Translations under genes and position numbers: made by a program
Source: Macrostomum lignano
Taxonomy: Eukaryota
Reading direction: 5' to 3'
NCBI GenBank assembly: GCA_002269645.1
Contig: NIVC01004732.1
Coordinates: 1 to 36,677 of the forward strand
DNA: 36,677 nt
Notes under the pieces: model-generated
What the model was told of the DNA's origin: nothing
The model's input: only the letters and a program-made list of their open reading frames with translations
Databases searched by the model: none
In this document: positions 5,695-28,026 of the stretch, piece by piece
How the letters are laid out: the number at the start of each line of letters is the position of its first letter
How positions within the stretch are numbered: position 1 is the first letter of the stretch

Positions 5695-6968
5695 TAGGGG
5701 TGTTCGGGATGGCATTTTTTCGGGGTTCGGGTTAACCCCGATCCCGAACATCTTTCGGGAATCCCGAACCCCGTCCCGAACATTTATCGGGAACCCCGAA
5801 CCCCGTCCCGAACCCTAATACCGACCCCGAACCCCGATAACCCGAAGTAAGCAATAGCATGAAATAAAAGTGGTATTGACGGCTTCTTACGACTATTAGC
5901 CTGTTTCAGTTCAACTTAAAGTTAATGTGAAATTAATTTTAGGCAGGTTGCATTTCTTTTGATGTGTGAAACATCATGTGCCTCTTTCTCTGCAGAGATG
6001 GAAGCTATCTTATCAATCAAGAATCAATCTCTCTTTTTCTTAATCTCGTTTACTTAGTCTTTGTTGGCATTGCCATTGATGCACGTTGACGCTAGTAAAC
6101 ACTAAAATAATCTGAATTCTCATGTCATCTAATCTGAATGATCAGACTACCAAGTGATAATAGAATAGAACGCGAGTCACTTTACAGTCTCTGGCTCAAC
6201 GAATATGGCATACAGCTAATCGAATTTATCTCGCAAGAACATTAACTTGCTGAGCGATGAGCTGGAAAGGATGCAGCGTTCCTTGCGCTTTAGAAAACCG
6301 GCAGCACTGAAGGCGCACTCTGTTGGGACAGATGATGCTGGGGCAGTGAGGTGAAGCTTAGCGAGCTCTGCCAGTTCTGGAAGATTAGCGGAGTTCTGCT
6401 TCCAGAATTCGCTGACTGCTACCTGAAAATTCTGCTGCGCTAGACTCCTGTACAGAGAAAGCTGATCAGCTGCTCTGCGCCTCGCTTCCTTCTTCCTCGC
6501 GTCTCCTCTGGCGCCGGAGTTCGATGCACTCGCAGTCGCATTGCACTCCTGAGTGGTAATTCCAGATAATCTGCAGAACTGCAAAAACTTGCATCCAGAG
6601 CTCTCTTCAGTACCCAAAATGACATTATCGTGCATCTCCTCGGTAGCGGCCATTGTATTTGCGCTTCTGGCAGCAGCTGCGGCATCTTGCTCAGAAAGCT
6701 CCTGCTCAAGGCTCCACATGACCTCACGTTAAAAACGAAAAAAGCTAATTCTAATTCATAAGGATTTTTTCGTAGTTCTATGGGAATGCAGAAAATTTGC
6801 GAAACCCCGAAAACCCCGAAATCCCGGTCCAAAATCCCGTCCCGAATCCCGATCCCGAACATTTATCGGGAACCCTGAACCCCATCCCGAACATTCATCG
6901 GGACCCCGAACCCCGACCCCTAATCCCGACCCGAACCCCGACCTAACCCCAAACCCCGAACACCCCTA
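5695..6968 (-). mobile_element. Non-autonomous (internally deleted) hAT DNA transposon, 1274 bp
   Basis: Perfect 14-bp TIR TAGGGGTGTTCGGG / CCCGAACACCCCTA, perfect 8-bp TSD ATTGGAGG (5687-5694 and 6969-6976), and many CCCCGAA subterminal repeats at both ends. Confidence 0.95.
6216..6719 (-). pseudogene. hAT transposase C-terminal dimerization domain remnant
   Basis: FWKQNSANLPELAELAKLHLTAPASSVPTECAFSAAG...R..L....LSKLMFL matches the hATC pattern, with the usual ER in SERxFS reading EC. The catalytic N-terminal part is absent. Confidence 0.9.
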
Positions 6969-7055: not shown

Positions 7056-8000
7056 CTCCCAAAGGTGCTCCGTGCGTACAACGTGCCAGAGCAGCTGATT
7101 TCGCCATCATGGCGACGTACCGTGATACGAAAGCTGCTTTTTCAACACCGGACGGCCTATCGGTTGAGACATCCTCCGGGGTGCTTCAGGGAGATACGCT
7201 TGCGCCATTCCTGTTCGTTCTGGTGCTTGACTGGGTGCTGCGGACCGCTCTTCCTACCAACTACGACGGCTTTCTGTTGCTGCGACGCGTGGGTCGACGT
7301 CAACCGGAGAGGCGACTCAGTGTGCTTGGCTACGCCGACGATCTCGCCCTGCTCTCCTTAACTGTCGAGGGCGCCCAGCGACAACTGGACAAGCTAGTTG
7401 CTGTTGCGGCGAGTGTCGGCCTGGTGGTTAACACGCAGAAGACTGGCGTGCTCTGTGTGCCGGACGACATCGAGGCTGCGATTTTGTACCGAGGCGCTGA
7501 TGGACAGGCGACAAAACTTCTGCGTTGTCAGCAGTTCGTCTACCTCCGCGGTCTGGTTCCCGGCGTTCACGAGGATTTGCGGCGTCGCCGCGGGCTTGCC
7601 TGGGCTGCCTTTCGTTCTGTGAGGGCAGTCCTGCAGTCCGAGGCGTTACCTGACCGCCAGAGGGCGGCGTTGTTCTAGGCGGTGATCGAGACCGTTCTGC
7701 TGTACAACGCCGAGACCTGGACGCTGACGAGTCGTCGAGCAACAAGTTGACGGGGTGCATGCTGGCCTGCTGCGCGCCGCCTTTAAGATCGGCTACGAGC
7801 GAGTGACCAACGCGGCTTTGTATCACCGCGCCGGCCTGGTCTGTCCAAGCAACCTGTTGGCGACTCCAGCTGGCAGGCCACATCATCCGCGCCGAGTCGT
7901 ACTGCTCTCAGCCGGTGCAGGTGCTGCTGCTGACACTGCAGGCACGCTACCGGCGGGGGCAGGCGTGCACTCGGCGTTTCGTCGACTGCCTACTGGCTGA
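7056..8000 (+). pseudogene. Reverse transcriptase remnant (RTE clade)
   Basis: GVLQGDTLAPFLFVLVLD and GYADDLALLS motifs, followed by VIETVLLYNAETWTLT after an in-frame TAG at 7676-7678. There is a frameshift near 7100. Confidence 0.92.
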
Positions 8001-9154: not shown

Positions 9155-10071
9155 CCAGGCACGTATTAAACATTCGCCGACACTTATATTCAGACACTTC
9201 TACAGACACTTTAGTTTCTGTCGTACGAATCGTAGGAACAAGCATTAAATTTGTTTATTTCTAACAAACTATCAGTAAAATGCTTTATTTTAAGCTTTTT
9301 TTGCTTTATTTTATTAAATATGAATCATGAAATTTGTTATTCTGCATAGATTCTCTTCACGTAAAGAAGAATGTTAAATTTGTCCAGGACACTTCGTAAA
9401 TCATTTTTAATAAATGTAAAATAAGTTTCTTGAAGTCCAAGAATTCAAAGAATCGCCTTATTTTCGTTGTGATGACAGATGAATGAACGAATGCCGAATG
9501 CGTTCTTGGCTTGTGGATGCAATGCGCCTTAATTCATTTCATTTATATATTTGTATTCGTATCTGAACAATCTATGTAGTCAAAGTAATTAAGATTATTC
9601 TAAATAATGTCTATATCTATTATTGAATTAAAAACTGGGTCGACTGGAACTCTGGAACGGCTATGAAACCCTACGACTACAACTACTACGGCGCACAGGA
9701 GAACTAACACTCAAAACACAGCGCATTCGCGTTTGAAATACGATAGGAATTAGCATACAGTAAAACAATAGTAGTAAAGTACGTACAGTAAGAATCGCGG
9801 AAATAGAAACTCACTACTGAATAAATACTAACTAAATAATATTCAAGAATGTCGGACACATCATAAAAAGTGCGGAGATTTAATTGATACATAAAAATAC
9901 TTTACATAAAATAAAGCAAAAAAGCTTAAAATAAAGCATTTTAAAACTGATAGTTTGTTAGGAATAAACAAATTTAATGCTTGTTCCTAAAAAAAAGATT
10001 CGTACGACAGAAACTAAAGTGTCTGTAGAAGTGTCTGAACAAGTGTCGGCGAATGTTTAATACGTGCCTGG
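9155..10071. mobile_element. MITE-like element with ~160-bp terminal inverted repeats
   Basis: 9155-~9315 (CCAGGCACGTATTAAACATTCGCCGACAC...) is the reverse complement of ~9905-10071. The interior is non-coding and no TSD was found. Confidence 0.75.
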
Positions 10072-11865
10072 CGCCTAAAAGCTGGAATTTTGACTTGAAA
10101 ATTATGTTTTAGAATGTAGTAGATATTTAGTCTATGTGCTGTTTGGTCGGTTTGGAGTTAAATGTATGCACACTTAATTATAAAAAAATACATAGAAATT
10201 TGGACAGTTATGAGTTAGGCCTAGAGAGTAAATCTTTGGTTTCCCTCTCGCTCCCCAGCCCCCATCCCGCTCACTCACCTCCCTCTTGTAATGCTATTTT
10301 TTATTTCTTCCTTATTGATTTGATAACTTCTGACTACAGTCGTTTACATTGAGCTTTCGTTTGTTTCATCGATCAAATATACCCTGACTAAGCCTTACCC
10401 ATACCCTTAGGCCCTAGTCTAAGGCCTACTGGCATTGTGGGTTGAAAGAAACACTTTTTTTCGCGTTTAATGTTGATTTAAGCTTTATCTAAGACCTATT
10501 CATTGTATTGATTGAGCGTGCAACTCTAGCAAGAGTTGTTTGTCTTTATTTTACTATAGGGGCCTACTTTGTATTTGTCCTTTATAGGCCTACACACCTA
10601 ACTTTGTCTTTATTCTACCTTTTTTTCTTATAGGACCTAAATGTAAAAGTCAAGAGACAAAATAGACACTTAAATGAATTAGAAAGCTATCTTAAAAATT
10701 ATTTTTTTTCTAGAGCCTACTTTGTTTCATTCTTAGACTTAAGTTTGAAATTAGGTAGGCCTAGGGACAGGGCCTATTTATAACTATGGTAAACATTTAA
10801 GAGTAAAAAATAAGCTTGCTGTCTAGGCCTAATATTTCAGTTTAAATGTAAATAAAAGCCTTAATAAATTAAGGATCTTAGGCTCATTCATAAAAGAAGA
10901 CCTAAAGATAAAGGGTAAAACTTTTTTTAATACTTTGGCAAAAATTTGCTTTGACCTTAGGCCTATAACATTGTTATTTTTCTAGGTCTAGGAGTACTGC
11001 TCAGGGCTCATGAGTCATGATATTATAAACTTCAAAACTAAAATAGCCTATCTAAAGCCTATTTATATTGCTTATTCTAGTTTTAGAACTAGATCCAATT
11101 TGTAAAGTATAACTTTTTGTTCCTTAAACTAGAAGGATATAAGTGCTTAAAGTTGTGATTATAATTATTGAATGGTAATAGCCAAGAATAAAGTGAAAAA
11201 TTGTGCAAAGTGAAGCTGTTAAAGTAGTCAAATATTCAGCAAAGTTAAATAGTTATATAGTTTTTTTTTCTTGGAAGATCCAAATTGATTATGGTTCTAG
11301 AATGGGCAATGTGAAAAGCCCCCTAGTCTTAAGAATTTAAACTAAAAACTTTTAAAATATATATTATTGAATAACTCAACTTTTATTGTTGGTATAGGTC
11401 CAGTTCTATATCTTATTTCAAACTTATTTTATATATTTAATTATTATTAAAAGCCTAACAATATTAAATAATTATAGGCTAAAAAAATAATAAAGAAAAG
11501 GCAAGGCCAATGTTAATATAAAAGCCTAGACCCCCTATATATTGCATTAGATTTTAGACCTACCCTGGGTGATAAAAGTTCTTTTTTATTTAATTTTATC
11601 TATTATTAAAATATTTCATTAAATTCAAATCTACTTGGAAAATGGCTGTGACATTTTGGCAAAAAATATATTAGTAAATATAAATAAGCCCAATAAAAAC
11701 TTTAAAACAAAGAGAAGGTTTAATTAAAAAAACTTGCAAAATTTATATCAACTTGGCCTAGAATATATTAAGCCAAAAATATAGGGCCTATTAAGGGCCT
11801 ATATATTATAAATAAAAAGTAGTCATTTTTATTGTCTAAAATGAAATGTAATCATTGATTATATA

Positions 11866-12114
11866 CATACATGCACAACCCCCCTGATTTACACTGGCCA
11901 TGCAACTTACTTCTTGACCAAAAATGCAACTTACCTATAAAAGAAACCCTAATGCAATTTTGGGTAAACAGCAGGAGTAACTATAACTGTCTTATAAGGG
12001 CTAAATGCCTCATTATCTAATTAGTACATCTATTTAGGCTGGGCATTTTTGCGACTTACCATTGGTCCACCAAAATTTACAGTGGCCAGGTCGGCCAGCA
12101 GTTGCGCATGTATG
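11866..12114. mobile_element. hAT-type MITE (249 bp) carrying a 28S rDNA fragment
   Basis: 14-bp TIR CATACATGCACAAC / GTTGCGCATGTATG (13/14 match) and 8-bp TSD ATTATATA (11858-11865, 12115-12122). Subterminal repeats are GC(A/G)ACTTAC x3 and TTTACA(C/G)TGGCCA x2. Confidence 0.85.
11962..12025 (+). pseudogene. Decayed 28S rRNA fragment spanning the R2 retrotransposon / I-PpoI target site
   Basis: 52/64 ungapped identity to the conserved eukaryotic LSU sequence as recalled, GGGTAAACGGCGGGAGTAACTATGACTCTCTTAAGGTAGCCAAATGCCTCGTCATCTAATTAGT. Confidence 0.88.
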
Positions 12115-12382
12115 ATTATATATTATATAAGATAAAAAAATTTTCCTATCTCTATTTAATATGTTTTCTTTCTAGAAAATTGTCTTTGAAAATTATATTA
12201 TCTAAAGATATTGCATTTTATTTTAACAACTAGAAATATGTATAACAAAATTATTCTAATAAATCATAGAAACAAAAATTAAAAGCAAAACATTGTTGAC
12301 AAAGTAGAAAAGAAAGTTTTTCAGTGCAATTTAAATATGATTATACAAAAAACTATCTTTAAATAAGTTTAATGGAAATATA

Positions 12383-12564
12383 TAGTAGCGCAACCAGAAA
12401 TTTTTCAAGGGGGGGGCGGATTCGGAGGGTAAAGTCCCAGGAGGGGGGCGGCGAAGGGGTGGCTCTGTTTTTGGCAAAAATTCGCTTGGTCCCCCCTTTG
12501 ATTTTTTTTGGTCCCCTGCCTAAGGGGGGCGACCACCCCCCCCCCTCCCCTGGTTGCGCCACTG
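12383..12564. mobile_element. hAT-type MITE (182 bp)
   Basis: 15-bp TIR TAGTAGCGCAACCAG / CTGGTTGCGCCACTG (13/15) and perfect 8-bp TSD GAAATATA (12375-12382, 12565-12572). Subterminal G/C runs are present. Confidence 0.9.
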
Positions 12565-13123
12565 GAAATATAAGTAATAATAACAAAGTGACTCTTAAAG
12601 TGACCCCGTGGTACATTTTTGCTGGACCCTTGATGCATGTCCATATATTTTCAAAGGTTTATTCCAATAGGTCAATTCACACATAGAGCCAAATTTAAAT
12701 GGATAGCATTGCATCTTCAAATGAAACAGCCCTAAAATTTATTAAATCATTAATTTGCTAAAACATTATAATACTTTGCCTAAGAAATATTTGCTAATAT
12801 ATTATTTTGCCAAAAATCATATAGCTAAAAAATCTACTTGAAAAGTTAAACTTAGAGAGTATAGTTTAAGTTATTAACAATCTTCTATATGTAGCTTTTG
12901 ATTGCACATAGTTAATTTGTTAGATTTTTATAGGAAAATAATGTTTAAAGCAAGAAAAATCCAACCTAAAAGCTGACTATTAAGCCTATGATGGTAGCAT
13001 CACCTTTGAGTTTAACATCAAAGCCTTCAAGCCATTGCTTGACCTTAACCCTTAACTCTTTTTGATGCTTGATCTACCCACAATTCCTTATTAACTCTAG
13101 ACATCTGAGCAATCCCCATGAGC

Positions 13124-14776
13124 CATAGCATTTCAGCAATTCCCTTCTGTGAGCCTTGAAATCCCAGCAATTCTCTCTATAAATCATAGCATTTCAGCAA
13201 TTCCCTTCTGTGAGCCTTGAAATCCCAGCAATTCTCTCTATACATCATAGCACTTCAGCAATTCCCTTCTGTGAGCCTTGAAATCCCAACAATTCTCTCT
13301 ATAAATCATAGCATTTCAGCAATTCCCTTCTGTGAGCCTCCCTATTGGAATAAATGTTAAAAACCCGCGGACGCGCGCTTTAGAAAAGAGTCAAACTATT
13401 TTACCGCGCTTTAGGATTATTAGAGATGTTCCGAAAGATCTGCAGTTTCGTCGAAATCAAAATTCGCTAACTTTCCAAAATCAAAATCAAAATTTCCCGA
13501 AATCAAATTCAGAAAAACAAAGTTTAGTATGATCAACACTCACTTTTTTACTTTCAATTTACTGCTTAAGCAAAAAGAAATACATGTATATGTAGTAGAA
13601 AGTAGTTTATTTTTAGCGACTTTTTAGACACTACCAAAATTTTCACTTCTAAATTTTATTTCGAAATTGAAATTCGCTCTAAAAAATTTCAAATTTTGGA
13701 AAATTGAAATTGAATTTTCGGAACATCTCTAAGCTTAATAAATTACGAGTGTATAAGCCCCTTCAACAGAGGTATTATACCCATTTCCATGTATATGTAT
13801 TTGCTAGAGCAGCAGCCAGTAAGAAAGGGCAGCGCACGCAGGCGCTGCGCCTGTGCGCGCGCTGCGCTTTAGAAAAATTTCAAAAGTGCGCCGGACACCG
13901 TCCGCGGTTTTACAACTTTTTCCTATAGGGGTGAGCCTTGAAATCCCAACAATTCTCTCTATAAATCATAGCATTTCAGCAATTCCCTTCTGTGAGCCTT
14001 GAAATCCCAACAATTCTCTCTATACATCATAGCATTTCAGCAATTCCCTTCTGTGAGCCTTGAAATCCCAACAATTCTCTCTATAAATCATAGCATTTCA
14101 GCAATTCCCTTCTGTGAGCCTTGAAATCCCAACAATTCTCTCTATAAATCATAGCATTTCAGCAATTCCCTTCTGTGAGCCTTGAAATCCCAACAATTCT
14201 CTCTATAAATCATAGCATTTCAGCAATTCCCTTCTGTGAGCCTTGAAATCCCAACAATTCTCTCTATACATCATAGCATTTCAGCAATTCCCTTCTGTGA
14301 GCCTTGAAATCCCAACAATTCTCTCTATACATCATAGCATTTCAGCAATTCCCTTCTGTGAGCCTTGAAATCCCAACAATTCTCTCTATAAATCATAGCA
14401 TTTCAGCAATTCCCTTCTGTGAGCCTTGAAATCCCAACAATTCTCTCTATAAATCATAGCATTTCAGCAATTCCCTTCTGTGAGCCTTGAAATCCCAACA
14501 ATTCTCTCTATAAATCATAGCATTTCAGCAATTCCCTTCTGTGAGCCTTGAAATCCCAACAATTCTCTCTATAAATCATAGCATTTCAGCAATTCCCTTC
14601 TGTGAGCCTTGAAATCCCAACAATTCTCTCTATACATCATAGCACTTCAGCAATTCCCTTCTGTGAGCCTTGAAATCCCAACAATTCTCTCTATACATCA
14701 TAGCATTTCAGCAATTCCCTTCTGTGAGCCTTGAAATCCCAACAATTCTCTCTATAAATCATAGCACTTCAGCAAT
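13124..14776. repeat. 61-bp minisatellite (~17 copies), split by a MITE
   Basis: Unit ATAAATCATAGCATTTCAGCAATTCCCTTCTGTGAGCCTTGAAATCCCAACAATTCTCTCT. About 3.5 copies lie before 13340 and about 14 after 13930. Confidence 0.97.
13340..13930. mobile_element. Non-autonomous DNA transposon (591 bp) inserted in the 61-bp array
   Basis: Imperfect TIR CCCTATTGGAA...CCGCGGACG / CGTCCGCGG...TTCCTATAGGG and perfect 8-bp TSD GTGAGCCT (13332-13339, 13931-13938). Confidence 0.9.
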
Positions 14777-14937
14777 CCTCTCAAGAGTCTACATTTAGAA
14801 AAAATAGGGAGATATAGATACAGATACGGATATAAGATAACTTCGAAACCCTACTTATGAATGTTAGTTGCCCTAGGCATCATTAGTTAAAAAGAACTAT
14901 TATTATGAAGTCTTTTCTCTCATGCAAGAGCAACAAA

Positions 14938-15042
14938 ATGTCGAAAGCAGCTACAAGGCGGCGTGGTCCAAAGCAGAGGACGCAGAGATACACTAGCAAT
15001 GTGTTCAGCATGTTCACCGAACAGTCAGTGCAGGAGTTCAAG
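14938..15042 (+). CDS. MRLC: Myosin II regulatory light chain, coding exon 1
   Basis: MSKAATRRRGPKQRTQRYTSNVFSMFTEQSVQEFK followed by a GT donor at 15043 (phase 0). Contains the RxTSNVF phospho-motif of non-muscle/smooth-type RLCs. Confidence 0.93.
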
Positions 15043-15389
15043 GTAGAATTGTTTAACAAGCAATCTTGCACTGCATCTGTGCCTCTCTGTGCCCCATCAC
15101 CTGCCACCACGCACTCACTGTGACAGTTGGCACTGGAATCCTTTACAATTATCGTCCGCATTGTTCGGCTGAAATTGCTTAGCTTTCTAATATAAGCAGG
15201 CCAGTGGACGGAAGTCGTAAAGGGTTCTATCGCTGTCTTAGCATCGTGTCCCACCTTTTCACTATCTAAGCGACCCGGATTTTAATGCTGTCTTTGTACA
15301 AATATTTTTGTTGTCATTATTTGTTGTTTTCGTTGTTTAGAGTTGAATTTTGTATGGCAGCTGCTGGTCAATAAATATCTACTATCGCA

Positions 15390-15805
15390 GATTGAGAATA
15401 GAGATTCCATTATTGTATATTAGGGATAGAAATCCAATTATAGAGGATTAGGGATAGAAATCCTATTATAGAGGATTAGGAATAGAGATTCCACTGTTGA
15501 GGATTAGAGATAAAAATCCCATTATAGAGGATTAAGGATAGAAATCCCATTGTTGAGGATTAAGGATCGGAATCCCATTGTTGAGGATTAGGGATAGAAA
15601 TCTCATTATTGAGGATTAGGAATAGAGATTCTATTATAGAGGATTAGGGATAGAAATCTCATTATTGAAGATTAGTGATAGAAATTCCATTGTTGAGGAT
15701 AAGGGGTAGAAATCTCAATATTGAGGATTAGAGGTAGAGATCCCATTTCTGAGGATTTGGAATAGAGATTCCATTATAGAGGATTAGAGATAGAAATCCC
15801 ATTAG
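15390..15805. repeat. 28-bp intronic minisatellite (~15 degenerate copies)
   Basis: Unit ~AGAGGATTAGGGATAGAAATCCCATTAT, containing the internal hairpin GGGAT-AGAA-ATCCC. Confidence 0.92.
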
Positions 15806-15904
15806 AGAATTAATGATATAGATACATTGGTCAAAAGGTGTGGGATCTAGATATCGAAGGTCTATCTCCAATAAAATATTTGCTCCCTACCCGTAATCGC
15901 CCAG

Positions 15905-16324
15905 GAGGCATTCAACATGATCGACACGAACAAGGACGGCGTGATCGACAGCGAGGATCTGTCCGAGATGCTGGTCTCTCTCGGCCGCGACGAAGCCGGC
16001 CTGCAGCCATACGTGGAAAGAATGCTGGCGGAGGCCCCTGGCCCCATCAATTTCACCATGTTCCTCACTCTGTTCGGCGAGAAAATGTCCGGCAGCGACC
16101 CGGAGGAGACAATTCGAAATGCGTTTGCTTGCTTCGATCCGGAAGGAACTGGCGTCATCTCCGAGGAGCAGCTGCGCGAGATGCTCACCACTATGGGCGA
16201 CAGGTGGACTGACGAGCAGGTCGACGAACTGCTGCACGGCGCCCCGGTTCGCGACGGCCGATTCGACTATGCCGAGTTTGCGCGCACGATCAAGCACGGC
16301 AAGAAGGAGGAGGGCTATAATTAG
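15905..16324 (+). CDS. MRLC: Myosin II regulatory light chain, coding exon 2 (spliced protein 174 aa)
   Basis: CCAG acceptor at 15901-15904, then [19 protein letters not shown] (EF-hand loop)...[18 protein letters not shown]...FDYAEF..IKHG, ending at a TAG stop. Confidence 0.95.
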
Positions 16325-17792: not shown

Positions 17793-18357
17793 TGTTGAGA
17801 GTCGCAATGTCACTATTCTTGTTGAGAATCGCAATGTCACTATTCTTGTTGAGAATCGCAATGTCACTATTCTTGTTGAGAATCGCAATGTCACTATTCT
17901 TGTTGAGAATCGCAATGTCACTATTCTTGTTGAGAATCGCAATGTCACTATTCTTGTTGAGAATCGCAATGTCACTATTCTTGTTGAGAATCGCAATGTC
18001 ACTATTCTTGTTGAGAATCGCAATGTCACTGTCTTGTTAAGAATCGCAATGTCACTCTCTTGTTAAGAATCGCAATGTCACTATTCTTGTTAAGAATCGC
18101 AATGTCACTTTTTTGTTAAGAATCGCAATGTCACTTTTTTGTTAAGAATCACAATGTCACTCTCTTGTTAAGAATCGCAATGTCACTCTCTTGTGAAGAA
18201 TCACAATGTCACTATTCCTGTTAAGAATCGCAATGTCACTCTCTTTTAAAGAATCGCAATGTCACTCTCTTTTTAAGAATCGCAATGTAACTCTCTTGTT
18301 AAGAATCGCAATGGCACTCTGTTGTTAAGAATCGCAATGGCACTGTCTTGTTAAGAA
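17793..18357. repeat. 27-bp minisatellite (~21 copies)
   Basis: Unit GAGAATCGCAATGTCACTATTCTTGTT, homogeneous at the left and degenerating to the right. Confidence 0.97.
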
Positions 18358-21958: not shown

Positions 21959-22037
21959 GTTTGTTTATTTTGGATGATTATTGATTTATAACCACTTACT
22001 GAAGTCTAGGCAAGAGTCTCCACTTGACTGATAATCT

Positions 22038-23225
22038 CACTGAGAATCGCCCCCACCCCAATCAGAATCGCTCCATCCCACTGAGAATCGCCCCCACCCC
22101 AATGAGAATCGCCCCATCCCAGTAAGAATCGCTCCCATCCCTCCATCCCACTGAGAATCGCCCCCACCCCAATGAGAATCGCCCCATCCCAGTAAGAATC
22201 GCTCCCATCCCAATGAGAATCGCCCCCACCCCAATGAGAATCGCCCCATCCCAGTAAGAATCGCTCCCATCCCAATGAGAATCGCCCCCACCCCAATGAA
22301 ATTCGCCCCAACCCAGTAAGAATCGCTCCCATCCCAATGAGAATCGCCCCCATCCCAATGAGAATCGCCCCCATTCCAATGAGAATCGCCCCCATTCCAA
22401 TGAGAATCGCTCTCATCCCAGTAAGAATCGCTCCCATCCCAATGAGAATCGCTCCCATCCCAATGAGAATCGCCCCATCCCAGTAAGAATCGCTCCCATC
22501 CCAGTAAGAATCGCTCCCATCCCAATGAGAATCGCTCCCATCCCAATGAGAATCGCTCCCATCCCAATGAGAATCGTCCCATCCCAGTAAGAATCGCTCC
22601 CATCCCAGTAAGAATCGCTCCCATCCCAATGAGAATCGCCCCCATTCCAATGAGAATCGCTCCCATCCCAATGAGAATCGCTCCCATCCCACTGAGAATC
22701 GCCCCCACCCCAATGAGAATCGCCCCCATTCCAATGAGAATCGCTCCCATCCCAATGAGAATCGCCCCCATCCCAATGAGAATCGCCCCATCCCAGTAAG
22801 AATCGCTCCCATCCCAGTAAGAATCGCTCCCATCCCAGTAAGAATCGCTCCCATTCCAATGAGAATCGCTCCCATCCCAATGAGAATCGCTCCCATCCCA
22901 ATGAGAATCGCTCCCATTCCAATGAGAATCGCTCCCATCCCAATGAGAATCGCTCCCATCCCAATGAGAATCGCCCCCATTCCAATGAGAATCGCTCCCA
23001 TCCCAATGAGAATCGCTCCCATCCCAATGAGAATCGCCCCCATCCCAACGAGACGGTCCCATCCCAATGAGAATCGCTCCCATTTCAATAATAATCGCTC
23101 CCATTCCGATGAGAATCGCTCCCATTCCAATGAGAATCGCTCCCATCCCAATGAGAATCGCCCCCATCCCAATGAGAATCGCCCCCATCCCAATGAGAAT
23201 CGCCCCCACCCCAATGAGAACCGCC
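22038..23225. repeat. 20-21-bp C-rich intronic minisatellite (~56 copies)
   Basis: Unit GAGAATCGC(C/T)CCCATCCCAAT and variants. Confidence 0.97.
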
Positions 23226-23843: not shown

Positions 23844-24615
23844 GAACCGCCCCATCCCTATCAAGAATCGCCCCATCCCAATCAAGAATCGCCCCATCCA
23901 AATCAAGAATCGCCCCATCCCAATCAAGAATCGCCCCATCCCAATCAAGAATCGCCCCATCCCATCCAAGAATCGCCCCATCCCATCCAAGAATTGCCCC
24001 ATCCCAATCAAGAATCGCCCCATCCCATCCAAGAATCGCCCCATCCCAATCAAGAATCGCCCCATCCCATCCAAGAATTGCCCCATCCCAATCAAGAATC
24101 GCCCCATCCCATCCAAGAATTGCCCCATCCCAATCAAGAATCGCCCCATCCAAATCAAGAATCGCCCCATCCCAATCAAGAATCGCCCCATCCCATCCAA
24201 GAATCGCCCCATCCCAATCAAGAATCGCCCCATCCAAATCAAGAATCGCCCCATCCCAATCAAGAATCGCCCATCCCATCCAAGAATCGCCCCATCCCAA
24301 TCAAGAATCGCCCCATCCCATCCAAGAATTGCCCCATCCCAATCAAGAATCGCCCCATCCAAATCAAGAATCGCCCCATCCCAATCAAGAATCGCCCCAT
24401 CCAAATCAAGAATCGCCCCATCCCAATCAAGAATCGCCCCATCCCATCCAAGAATCGCCCCATCCCAATCAAGAATCGCCCCATCCCAATCAAGAATCGC
24501 CCCATCCCATCCAAGAATCGCCCCATCCCAATCAAGAATCGCCCCATCCCAATCAAGAATCGCCCCATCCCATCCAAGAATCGCCCCATCCCAATCAAGA
24601 ATCGCCCCATCCCAT
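23844..24615. repeat. 21-bp C-rich minisatellite (~37 copies)
   Basis: Unit AAGAATCGCCCCATCCCAATC / ...CCCATCC, a sibling of the 22038-23225 unit. Confidence 0.97.
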
Positions 24616-27572: not shown

Positions 27573-27762
27573 GCAAACAGAGCTGGATAGAGGGTGGGGG
27601 GACAGACAGGGGAGTGGGAGAAGTTCATGGCCCAAGTGTACTCTCGCGAGCTCATGCGCGGGTACACAATATTCCTTGAAAAGCCAGACAGAACTGAGCC
27701 TAATCTCTCTGATCCGCTCCGCTCGTAGGCGAATATTTTCAAACTTTCTAAGAAGAAAAATC

Positions 27763-27947
27763 ATGGCCGATCTAAAGTCGAGCTTTGTCGCTTTCTGCGA
27801 CGCCACAAAGAAAGGTTCGGACAAGGCTAGCGACAAAACTATTAAGAAGATCTTCACGGATTGCGGCGTTTTCAAAGCGCTCAAGTTGACTTCGAATGAC
27901 ATGGACATCTCGGTGTCCTCATTTAAGGGCAAGGAGAAGATCAAAGG
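27763..27947 (+). CDS. TPPP: Tubulin polymerization-promoting protein (p25alpha family), exon 1
   Basis: MADLKSSFVAFCD...KIFTDCGV...TSNDMDI..SFKGK, with a phase-2 donor GG/GTAATG at 27948. Confidence 0.88.
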
Positions 27948-28026
27948 GTAATGGGAAATAATTGACACTATGAATTCCTTAGAATTCAGAATAATTGAGT
28001 CTGAATAAAATGTTCTACCAATGCAG

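Follow-up and report, generated by a model that had tools for sequence, protein, structure and literature searches.

Loss of CpG dinucleotides through deamination of 5-methylcytosine (5mC) is known from vertebrate bulk DNA, from old transposon copies and from the methylated compartments of mosaic invertebrate genomes, and vertebrate-like ratios of observed to expected CpG (o/e) are 0.15–0.2. Two further systems that turn C into T have been described. Fungal repeat-induced point mutation (RIP), represented by the RID/DIM-2 system of Neurospora crassa and by CpG- and CpA-biased variants in other ascomycetes, is usually called where TpA/ApT lies above 0.89 and (CpA+TpG)/(ApC+GpT) below 1.03; its preference for a 3′ purine is shared with DNMT3-type non-CG methylation. 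The AID/APOBEC enzymes, which edit retroelements in vertebrates, leave APOBEC signatures that depend on the 5′ neighbour (TpC, CpC or WRC) and are usually strand-biased. Here we compare with these systems a CpG-poor domain at positions 10519–14826 of a 36,677-bp stretch of the Macrostomum lignano genome (contig NIVC01004732.1; ‘the window’ below means this whole stretch). A preliminary description had presented the domain as a 4.3-kb CpG desert with a RIP-like signature, and had proposed a locally acting C-to-T process as its cause. We find that local loss of CpG by C-to-T change is likely and that RIP is unsupported; on present evidence, ordinary features account for much of the finding.

The CpG counts themselves proved accurate. 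The four runs reported to be free of CpG (10519–12051, 12107–12388, 12609–13365 and 13931–14826) match to the base, and the window outside the domain is as CpG-rich as claimed, with a CpG o/e of 0.81 as against 0.36 in the domain, whose GC content is 0.33. In the first run, where a few tens of CpGs had been thought missing, we counted none against 30.4 expected, and 2000 mononucleotide shuffles of this run gave a mean of 30.3 CpGs and a minimum of 17.

The domain is a composite of CpG-depleted old AT-rich debris, a CpG-free young satellite, and recent insertions that carry CpGs. The CpG observation is real, yet roughly one quarter of the desert is trivial: positions 13105–13339 (+, ~3.5 copies) and 13931–14776 (+, 13.9 copies, 98% identical), both counted earlier as desert, make up one 61-bp satellite of ~1.1 kb. 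Its copies, about 18 in all, are 96–98% identical and differ at three polymorphic positions, one of them a transversion. The unit contains no CpG, is rich in CpA/TpG (o/e 1.27) and is poor in TpA (0.56). Because only ~1.8 CpGs would be expected in a 61-bp unit of such composition, zero is unremarkable, and because a single unit has been repeated ~18 times, this ~1.1 kb counts as one small observation. All other CpG-free runs of at least 300 bp in the window are likewise tandem arrays (six arrays, with runs of 300–400 bp). This part of the domain therefore differs in nothing from the plain CpG-free mini- and microsatellite arrays that it resembles, and merely inflates the size of the desert.

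The preliminary description had also recognised three insertions flanked by target-site duplications (TSDs), and had placed all CpGs of the domain but one inside them. Two of the three stand. Insertion 3 (13340–13930) is a 591-bp element resembling a miniature inverted-repeat transposable element (MITE), with terminal inverted repeats (TIRs) of ~34 bp that start CCCTAT, 30 CpGs (o/e 1.6) and a perfect 8-bp TSD, GTGAGCCT, at 13332–13339 and 13931–13938; when it is excised together with one TSD copy, the 61-bp phase of the satellite comes back into register. Insertion 2 (12388–12563) is a short foldback of G/C runs with 10-bp TIRs (GCGCAACCAG / CTGGTTGCGC) and 8 CpGs, flanked by a slightly diverged direct repeat of 13/14 bp (GGAAATATATAGTA at 12374–12387 and GGAAATATAAGTA at 12564–12576). 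For the third candidate, 12052–12106, we found no TSD; this segment, which holds 3 CpGs, pairs as a TIR with 11866–11879 and is the right end of a small TIR-bounded element. The sole outlying CpG lies at 12607, and the boundaries of the two remaining insertions are corrected to 12388–12563 and 13340–13930. The insertion with the perfect TSD has a CpG o/e of 1.6, and the one with the diverged flanking repeat an o/e of about 0.5; these two datable insertions are consistent with a progressive decay of CpG over time.

What remains once the satellite and the insertions are set aside is ~2.3 kb of unique, non-coding DNA (10519–12051, 12107–12387 and 12564–13104). It comprises block A1 (10519–11857; 27% GC, free of CpG), most of the TIR-bounded element (11858–12122), block B (12107–12387; 18% GC, free of CpG, although with 2.3 CpGs expected it is uninformative alone) and block C (12564–13104; ~29% GC, with the one CpG at 12607). 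Counted over 2292 bp at 27% GC, this unique part has no CpG against 42.3 expected, together with 76 GpC and 135 CC+GG; with the corrected boundary of insertion 2 it holds 1 CpG of about 44 expected. The depletion is thus specific to CpG, as decay by 5mC deamination would leave it, and the other G/C dinucleotides are unaffected. Neither composition nor transposon ancestry explains it. The adjoining AT-rich flank has 55 CpG and 64 GpC, another AT-rich kilobase 30 and 44, and seven comparator segments of the same window (GC 0.31–0.42) have CpG o/e values of 0.6–1.4. The kilobases with degenerate hAT and reverse-transcriptase fragments stand at 0.90 and 1.08. Because these AT-rich comparators and transposon-bearing kilobases keep their CpGs, AT-richness and the status of transposon debris fail as causes of the loss. 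An excess of GpC is common to the AT-rich DNA of this window, and therefore the special features of the unique part are only the loss of CpG and an overrepresented word, TAGGCCTA, which we take up below.

The clearest view of past CpGs comes from sequences whose ancestor can be read. The embedded 28S rRNA fragment that had been reported is real: a 114-bp relic (11936–12049, +) within the TIR-bounded element matches Rfam LSU_rRNA_eukarya positions 2222–2310 (32.9 bits, E 7e-7) when scored as a short piece, and was missed by the Rfam scan of the whole window. It spans the R2/I-PpoI target region. Against the Rfam consensus and universally conserved 28S sequence, 65 nt could be aligned with confidence, and the substitution spectrum is as previously described: outside the R2-site core there are seven substitutions, six of them transitions (three at CpG and three at CpA/TpG) and one a transversion. 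All six transitions are G:C to A:T and fall on both strands (4 G-to-A, 2 C-to-T), while none of 33 A:T sites has changed. Each of the three ancestral CpGs in the confidently aligned part has changed, once each. Where the alignment is weaker, an upstream gCgCGGG has become TTTTGGG, and the CpGs of a downstream GACGCGC are gone too; the ancestor certainly had at least five CpGs, and none is left.

Two further pairs of sequences bear on the same question. The 14-nt TIRs of the element, CATACATGCACAAC (11866–11879) and GTTGCGCATGTATG (12101–12114; reverse complement CATACATGCGCAAC), differ as GCAC versus GCGC, the CpG having been lost in the left arm only. The 11-bp direct repeat that brackets the 28S relic, TGCAACTTACC (11925–11935) and TGCGACTTACC (12050–12060), differs as TGCAAC versus TGCGAC. 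CpG against CpA is the only difference within either pair, and each time the desert-side copy has CpA. The direction from CpG to CpA is our reading of these pairs; the converse, two independent A-to-G gains within 55 bp, would be less likely. Together the relic, the TIR pair and the repeat pair, three independent comparisons, speak for an earlier presence of CpGs in the desert and their subsequent loss. The survival of CpG in this element has a sharp edge at 12051/12052: all ancestor-inferable CpGs to its left are lost, and three are kept in the 55 bp to its right, among them those of the matching TIR and of the matching repeat copy.

The relic also carries a signal at CpA. Three of its four CpA/TpG sites have become TpA, and no cytosine among 18 in CpC or CpT has changed, so that 6 of 10 CpG/CpA cytosines became T as against 0 of 18 (Fisher P = 5.6e-4; CpA alone against CpY, P = 0.0026). 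The six mutated cytosines have the 5′ neighbours C, C, T, C, A and T and the 3′ neighbours G, G, A, A, G and A. Given the mixed 5′ neighbours and the involvement of both strands, what the six sites share is the 3′ purine, and the pattern is not of the APOBEC type. Of all our results, this one alone keeps the earlier proposal in play. The CpA signal, which consists of three substitutions in one 65-nt relic and was evaluated post hoc on the data that prompted the hypothesis, is suggestive, and it may predate the insertion of the relic, having arisen, for example, in a silenced ribosomal DNA (rDNA) unit.

A second sequence with a known ancestor would extend this record, and none that could be trusted emerged from local alignments of insertions 2 and 3, from the flanks of the near-palindrome TTTGGCAAAAA or from Rfam scans. 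Transition-tolerant local alignments for relics of insertion 3 returned low-complexity matches only. An 18-nt match to insertion 2 (TTTGGCAAAAATT[C/T]GCTT, with a CpG/TpG difference) barely exceeded shuffled controls, and a 23-nt match to the terminus of insertion 3 at 12649–12671, which extends by eye as CGCGCG versus TGCATG, was too short; we set both aside.

Taken with these observations, the explanation we favour, at a probability of about one half, is a local decay of CpG by 5mC deamination in an old, repeat-derived intergenic patch, to which a CpG-free satellite later added length and into which younger elements with CpGs inserted. Under this explanation, ~2.3 kb of old AT-rich repeat debris (the TAGGCCTA-rich block, the TIR element with its 28S relic, and two AT-rich blocks) would have been methylated at cytosines in the germ line, and spontaneous deamination of 5mC, together with a general G:C-to-A:T drift, would have converted all of its CpGs save one, mainly to TpG/CpA. 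The young, homogeneous 61-bp satellite, whose unit would be CpG-free by chance, would have added 1.1 kb of length and no evidence. The CpG-carrying elements would have inserted later, with their decay still to come. The CpG-specific depletion, the mosaic make-up of the domain, the young insertions and the change of CpG to CpA/TpG where an ancestor can be inferred are shown by the sequence; a causal role of methylation, and its local targeting, we infer. The resemblance to animal 5mC decay lies in the CpG-specific loss that leaves GpC untouched, in the replacement of CpG by TpG or CpA at sites of known ancestry (three of three in the relic, and the two pairs if their direction is as we read it), in young insertions that still bear CpGs, and in a host with suitable enzymes. 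M. lignano retains DNMT1 and DNMT3, with 5mC at a low level and in a pattern that is unknown (PMC11292947, PMC9246332, PMC10658182).

Several points weigh against this explanation. The depletion is unusually complete, since an o/e of 0.15–0.2 would leave about 6–8 CpGs in the unique part and 1 remains. Nor is there a clear excess of TpG/CpA, for which the o/e is 0.94 overall and 0.78 in block A1. The gene-proximal sequence on the right (CpG o/e 0.73–1.07) and the left flank are undepleted, so a special local target must be assumed. Segment 12052–12106 keeps its 3 CpGs though it seemingly belongs to the same TIR element as the desert sequence next to it, and this leaves the edge at 12051/12052 unexplained. 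The polarity of the TIR and repeat pairs was read without an outgroup, and the changes in the 28S relic may be older than its insertion, dating from a silenced rDNA unit. Compared with the described cases of animal CpG decay, therefore, the locus differs in its near-total loss, in the confinement of that loss to a 2–4 kb intergenic patch, in lacking a clear TpG/CpA surplus, and in a host whose genome has normal CpG elsewhere (o/e 0.8) and is reportedly only weakly methylated; our case is also known from sequence alone.

The word cluster bears on what the old debris may be. The preliminary description had called TAGGCCTA strikingly frequent, and it is: there are five exact copies, all within 10216–10965, where 0.51 would be expected over the window as a whole. 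GGCCTA/TAGGCC is enriched 49-fold in 10200–11830, and the cluster of TAGGCCTA and degenerate GGCCTA-type words extends over 10216–11801, within short degenerate direct repeats. The proposal that TAGGCCTA arose from CGGGCCCG by serial C-to-T change found no supporting evidence, and cluster and desert do not coincide, since the cluster starts at 10216, ~300 bp before the CpG-free sequence begins. The palindrome sits in four degenerate direct-repeat families (D1, D6, D14 and D17), and a simpler reading is that it is a binding motif or a core that a degenerate repeat has conserved; the cluster may represent a decayed minisatellite core, protein-binding sites, or repeats from the subterminal regions of a DNA transposon. 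A literature search for TAGGCCTA returned irrelevant primer matches only.

One rival explanation holds that a locally acting, double-strand hypermutation changed C to T at both CpG and CpA, whether by a RIP-like process or through dense CG and CA methylation by a DNMT3-type enzyme, in the service of repeat silencing. The idea of the preliminary description that CpGs were removed locally has support from the relic and the two pairs; its RIP label does not hold. TpA/ApT and (CpA+TpG)/(ApC+GpT) are 0.93 and 1.61 in the domain, 1.13 and 1.25 in the unique part, and 0.46 and 3.84 in the satellite, so that the second index of the domain and of the unique part stays above the usual cut-off of 1.03. 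CpG-normal AT-rich comparators of the same window cover 0.75–1.11 and 0.96–1.67, and among them a foldback element at 9155–10071 reaches 1.00 and 0.96; the indices thus do not set the desert apart, and segments with normal CpG look equally or more RIP-like. Block A1 alone comes near the composition expected of RIP, leaning that way with indices of 1.25 and 1.05 and a CpA/TpG o/e of 0.78, the lowest in the window. CpA/TpG is not depleted in the other three of the four unique sub-blocks (1.21 in the element that hosts the relic, 1.15 in block B and 1.19 in block C), where it lies within the range of the comparators (0.93–1.25). A hypermutation aimed at repeats should, moreover, have mutated two ideal targets, the satellite with its ~18 copies and the foldback of 917 bp with 165-bp arms, and both are untouched. 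The likeness to fungal RIP accordingly comes down to the AT-rich product, to a TpA/ApT above 0.89 in block A1, and to the G:C-to-A:T changes on both strands in a 3′-purine context in the 28S relic, one 65-nt sequence, in which the contrast between CpG/CpA and CpC/CpT cytosines would suit a DNMT3-type enzyme as well, such as the literature records in M. lignano. The desert as a whole keeps CpA/TpG and loses CpG. M. lignano is an animal, and we know of no RID homologue in it. With a CpA component of three post hoc substitutions and no independent ancestor-known sequence in the desert, we regard such hypermutation as improbable. Editing of the AID/APOBEC kind would share the clustered C-to-T and G-to-A changes in a retroposed-looking fragment, and it is contradicted by the mixed 5′ neighbours, the constant 3′ purine and the use of both strands.

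Somewhat better placed, though still unlikely, is the possibility that the unique blocks never held many CpGs and that no special mutation took place: blocks A–C could have been amplified from short, CpG-free, AT-rich units with a core such as TAGGCCTA, or could descend from a CpG-free transposon consensus. In this window about half of ~20 tandem arrays have CpG-free units, the other long CpG-free runs are all arrays, the degenerate direct repeats of block A surround a TAGGCCTA core, CpA/TpG shows no excess, and 15% of the genome consists of tandem and simple repeats (PMC5730564). However, Tandem Repeats Finder (TRF) detected no periodicity in blocks A–C even at a score of 30, and an array decayed to that degree should have gained new CpGs. 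The clustering of G and C in the unique part, with its many GpC and CC+GG and no CpG, also argues against an intrinsic shortage, and the explanation is weakened by the 28S relic, which lost all of at least five ancestral CpGs, and by the TIR and repeat partners, which differ exactly at CpG. A foreign or artefactual origin, be it a contaminant, a horizontal transfer, a nuclear mitochondrial copy or an assembly chimera of other native composition, would account for a composition sharply unlike that of the flanks and for the lack of a match elsewhere in the window, where a sensitive self-BLAST of 10100–13100 found no paralogue: its matches were short, weak and AT-rich, apart from one inverted repeat inside the desert (78 nt, 70%). 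We consider this origin hardly credible. The block is continuous with, and interrupted by, repeats of host type (the satellite, TSD-bearing MITE-like elements and a eukaryotic 28S relic), and 110 bp separate its end from a gene whose product is 100% identical to an M. lignano protein. The unique part has no open reading frames (ORFs; none of at least 50 aa in block A1) and no strand asymmetry, and Rfam scans of the desert in small pieces found no conserved-RNA relic except the 28S fragment and no organellar RNA genes. Exact scans with single words returned no match for a satellite word in bacterial and archaeal genomes or for words from block A and insertion 3 in metagenomes.

Several features within the domain deserve mention in their own right. 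The 28S relic is rearranged exactly at the R2/I-PpoI target site, where TCTTAAGG^TAGCC has become TCTTATAAGG--GCT. Its appearance suggests that an rDNA unit, either cut or occupied at its R2 site, was the source of a copy made by retroposition or as filler. Insertion 3 contains a perfect 17-bp inverted repeat (13420–13436, TTAGAGATGTTCCGAAA; 13716–13732, TTTCGGAACATCTCTAA) that bounds ~313 bp and may mark a nested smaller MITE. The near-palindromic TTTGGCAAAAA occurs in the domain at 10934, 11655, 12470 and 12804, one of these sites lying inside insertion 2; with at most one mismatch it has 7 matches as against 1.9 expected, and the flanks of the four sites do not align with one another. The foldback at 9155–10071, 450 bp to the left of the desert, is a young element of 917 bp with ~165-bp arms that are 98–100% complementary, a GC content of 33% and a CpG o/e of 1.42.

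The domain is intergenic. Its right end lies 110 bp upstream of the start codon of a myosin regulatory light chain gene (14938–16324, +), which has two coding exons only (14938–15042 and 15905–16324) and a single intron (15043–15904); the spliced product of 174 aa is identical to a UniRef protein of Macrostomum lignano, and the second-best match, at 83%, is likewise from Macrostomum lignano. UniRef contains three identical copies of this light chain. Exact-protein look-ups with the light chain, with the ORF of its exon 2 and with the 83% paralogue returned no homeologous or paralogous locus. A 28-bp minisatellite (15398–15804) occupies half of the intron, and its unit and that of the 61-bp satellite have AAATCCCA-like words in common. 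Elsewhere the window contains an ORF with a hAT transposase dimerisation domain (6216–6719, −), a reverse-transcriptase fragment (7109–7678, +) within a block of 62% GC, and an exon-like ORF with a p25-alpha (TPPP) domain (27676–27951, +). It is rich in minisatellites, with 36 TRF rows. Four different minisatellites have a GAATCGC core in common (17793–18357, 22034–23224, 22114–22170 and 23844–24614, with units of 27, 21, 29 and 21 bp), so that these arrays may be related as a family. This crowding of minisatellites and transposon debris is in line with the repeat-rich genome of M. lignano, more than half of which is repetitive; its DV1 assembly includes 180 Mb in blocks with an identity of at least 95% (PMC5730564).

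A genomic pattern of DNA methylation has not been described for any free-living flatworm (PMC9246332). M. lignano is among the few flatworms that keep both DNMT1 and DNMT3, and a near-complete loss of CpG in its otherwise CpG-normal genome suggests that methylation is or was aimed at non-genic or repeat-derived patches and not at gene bodies. If so, CpG deserts would offer a cheap map, drawn from sequence only, of former methylation targets. That something new lies behind the CpA signal is a long shot, and equally so that M. lignano has a locally targeted, double-strand C-to-T hypermutation of cytosines followed by a purine (CpG and CpA), as an animal analogue of RIP or as the footprint of DNMT3 acting at CG and CA, that erases CpG completely from selected repeat-derived patches and marks displaced rDNA. 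Were the CpA component of the 28S relic to prove general, it would point to a process in an animal that resembles RIP, and that would be truly unexpected.

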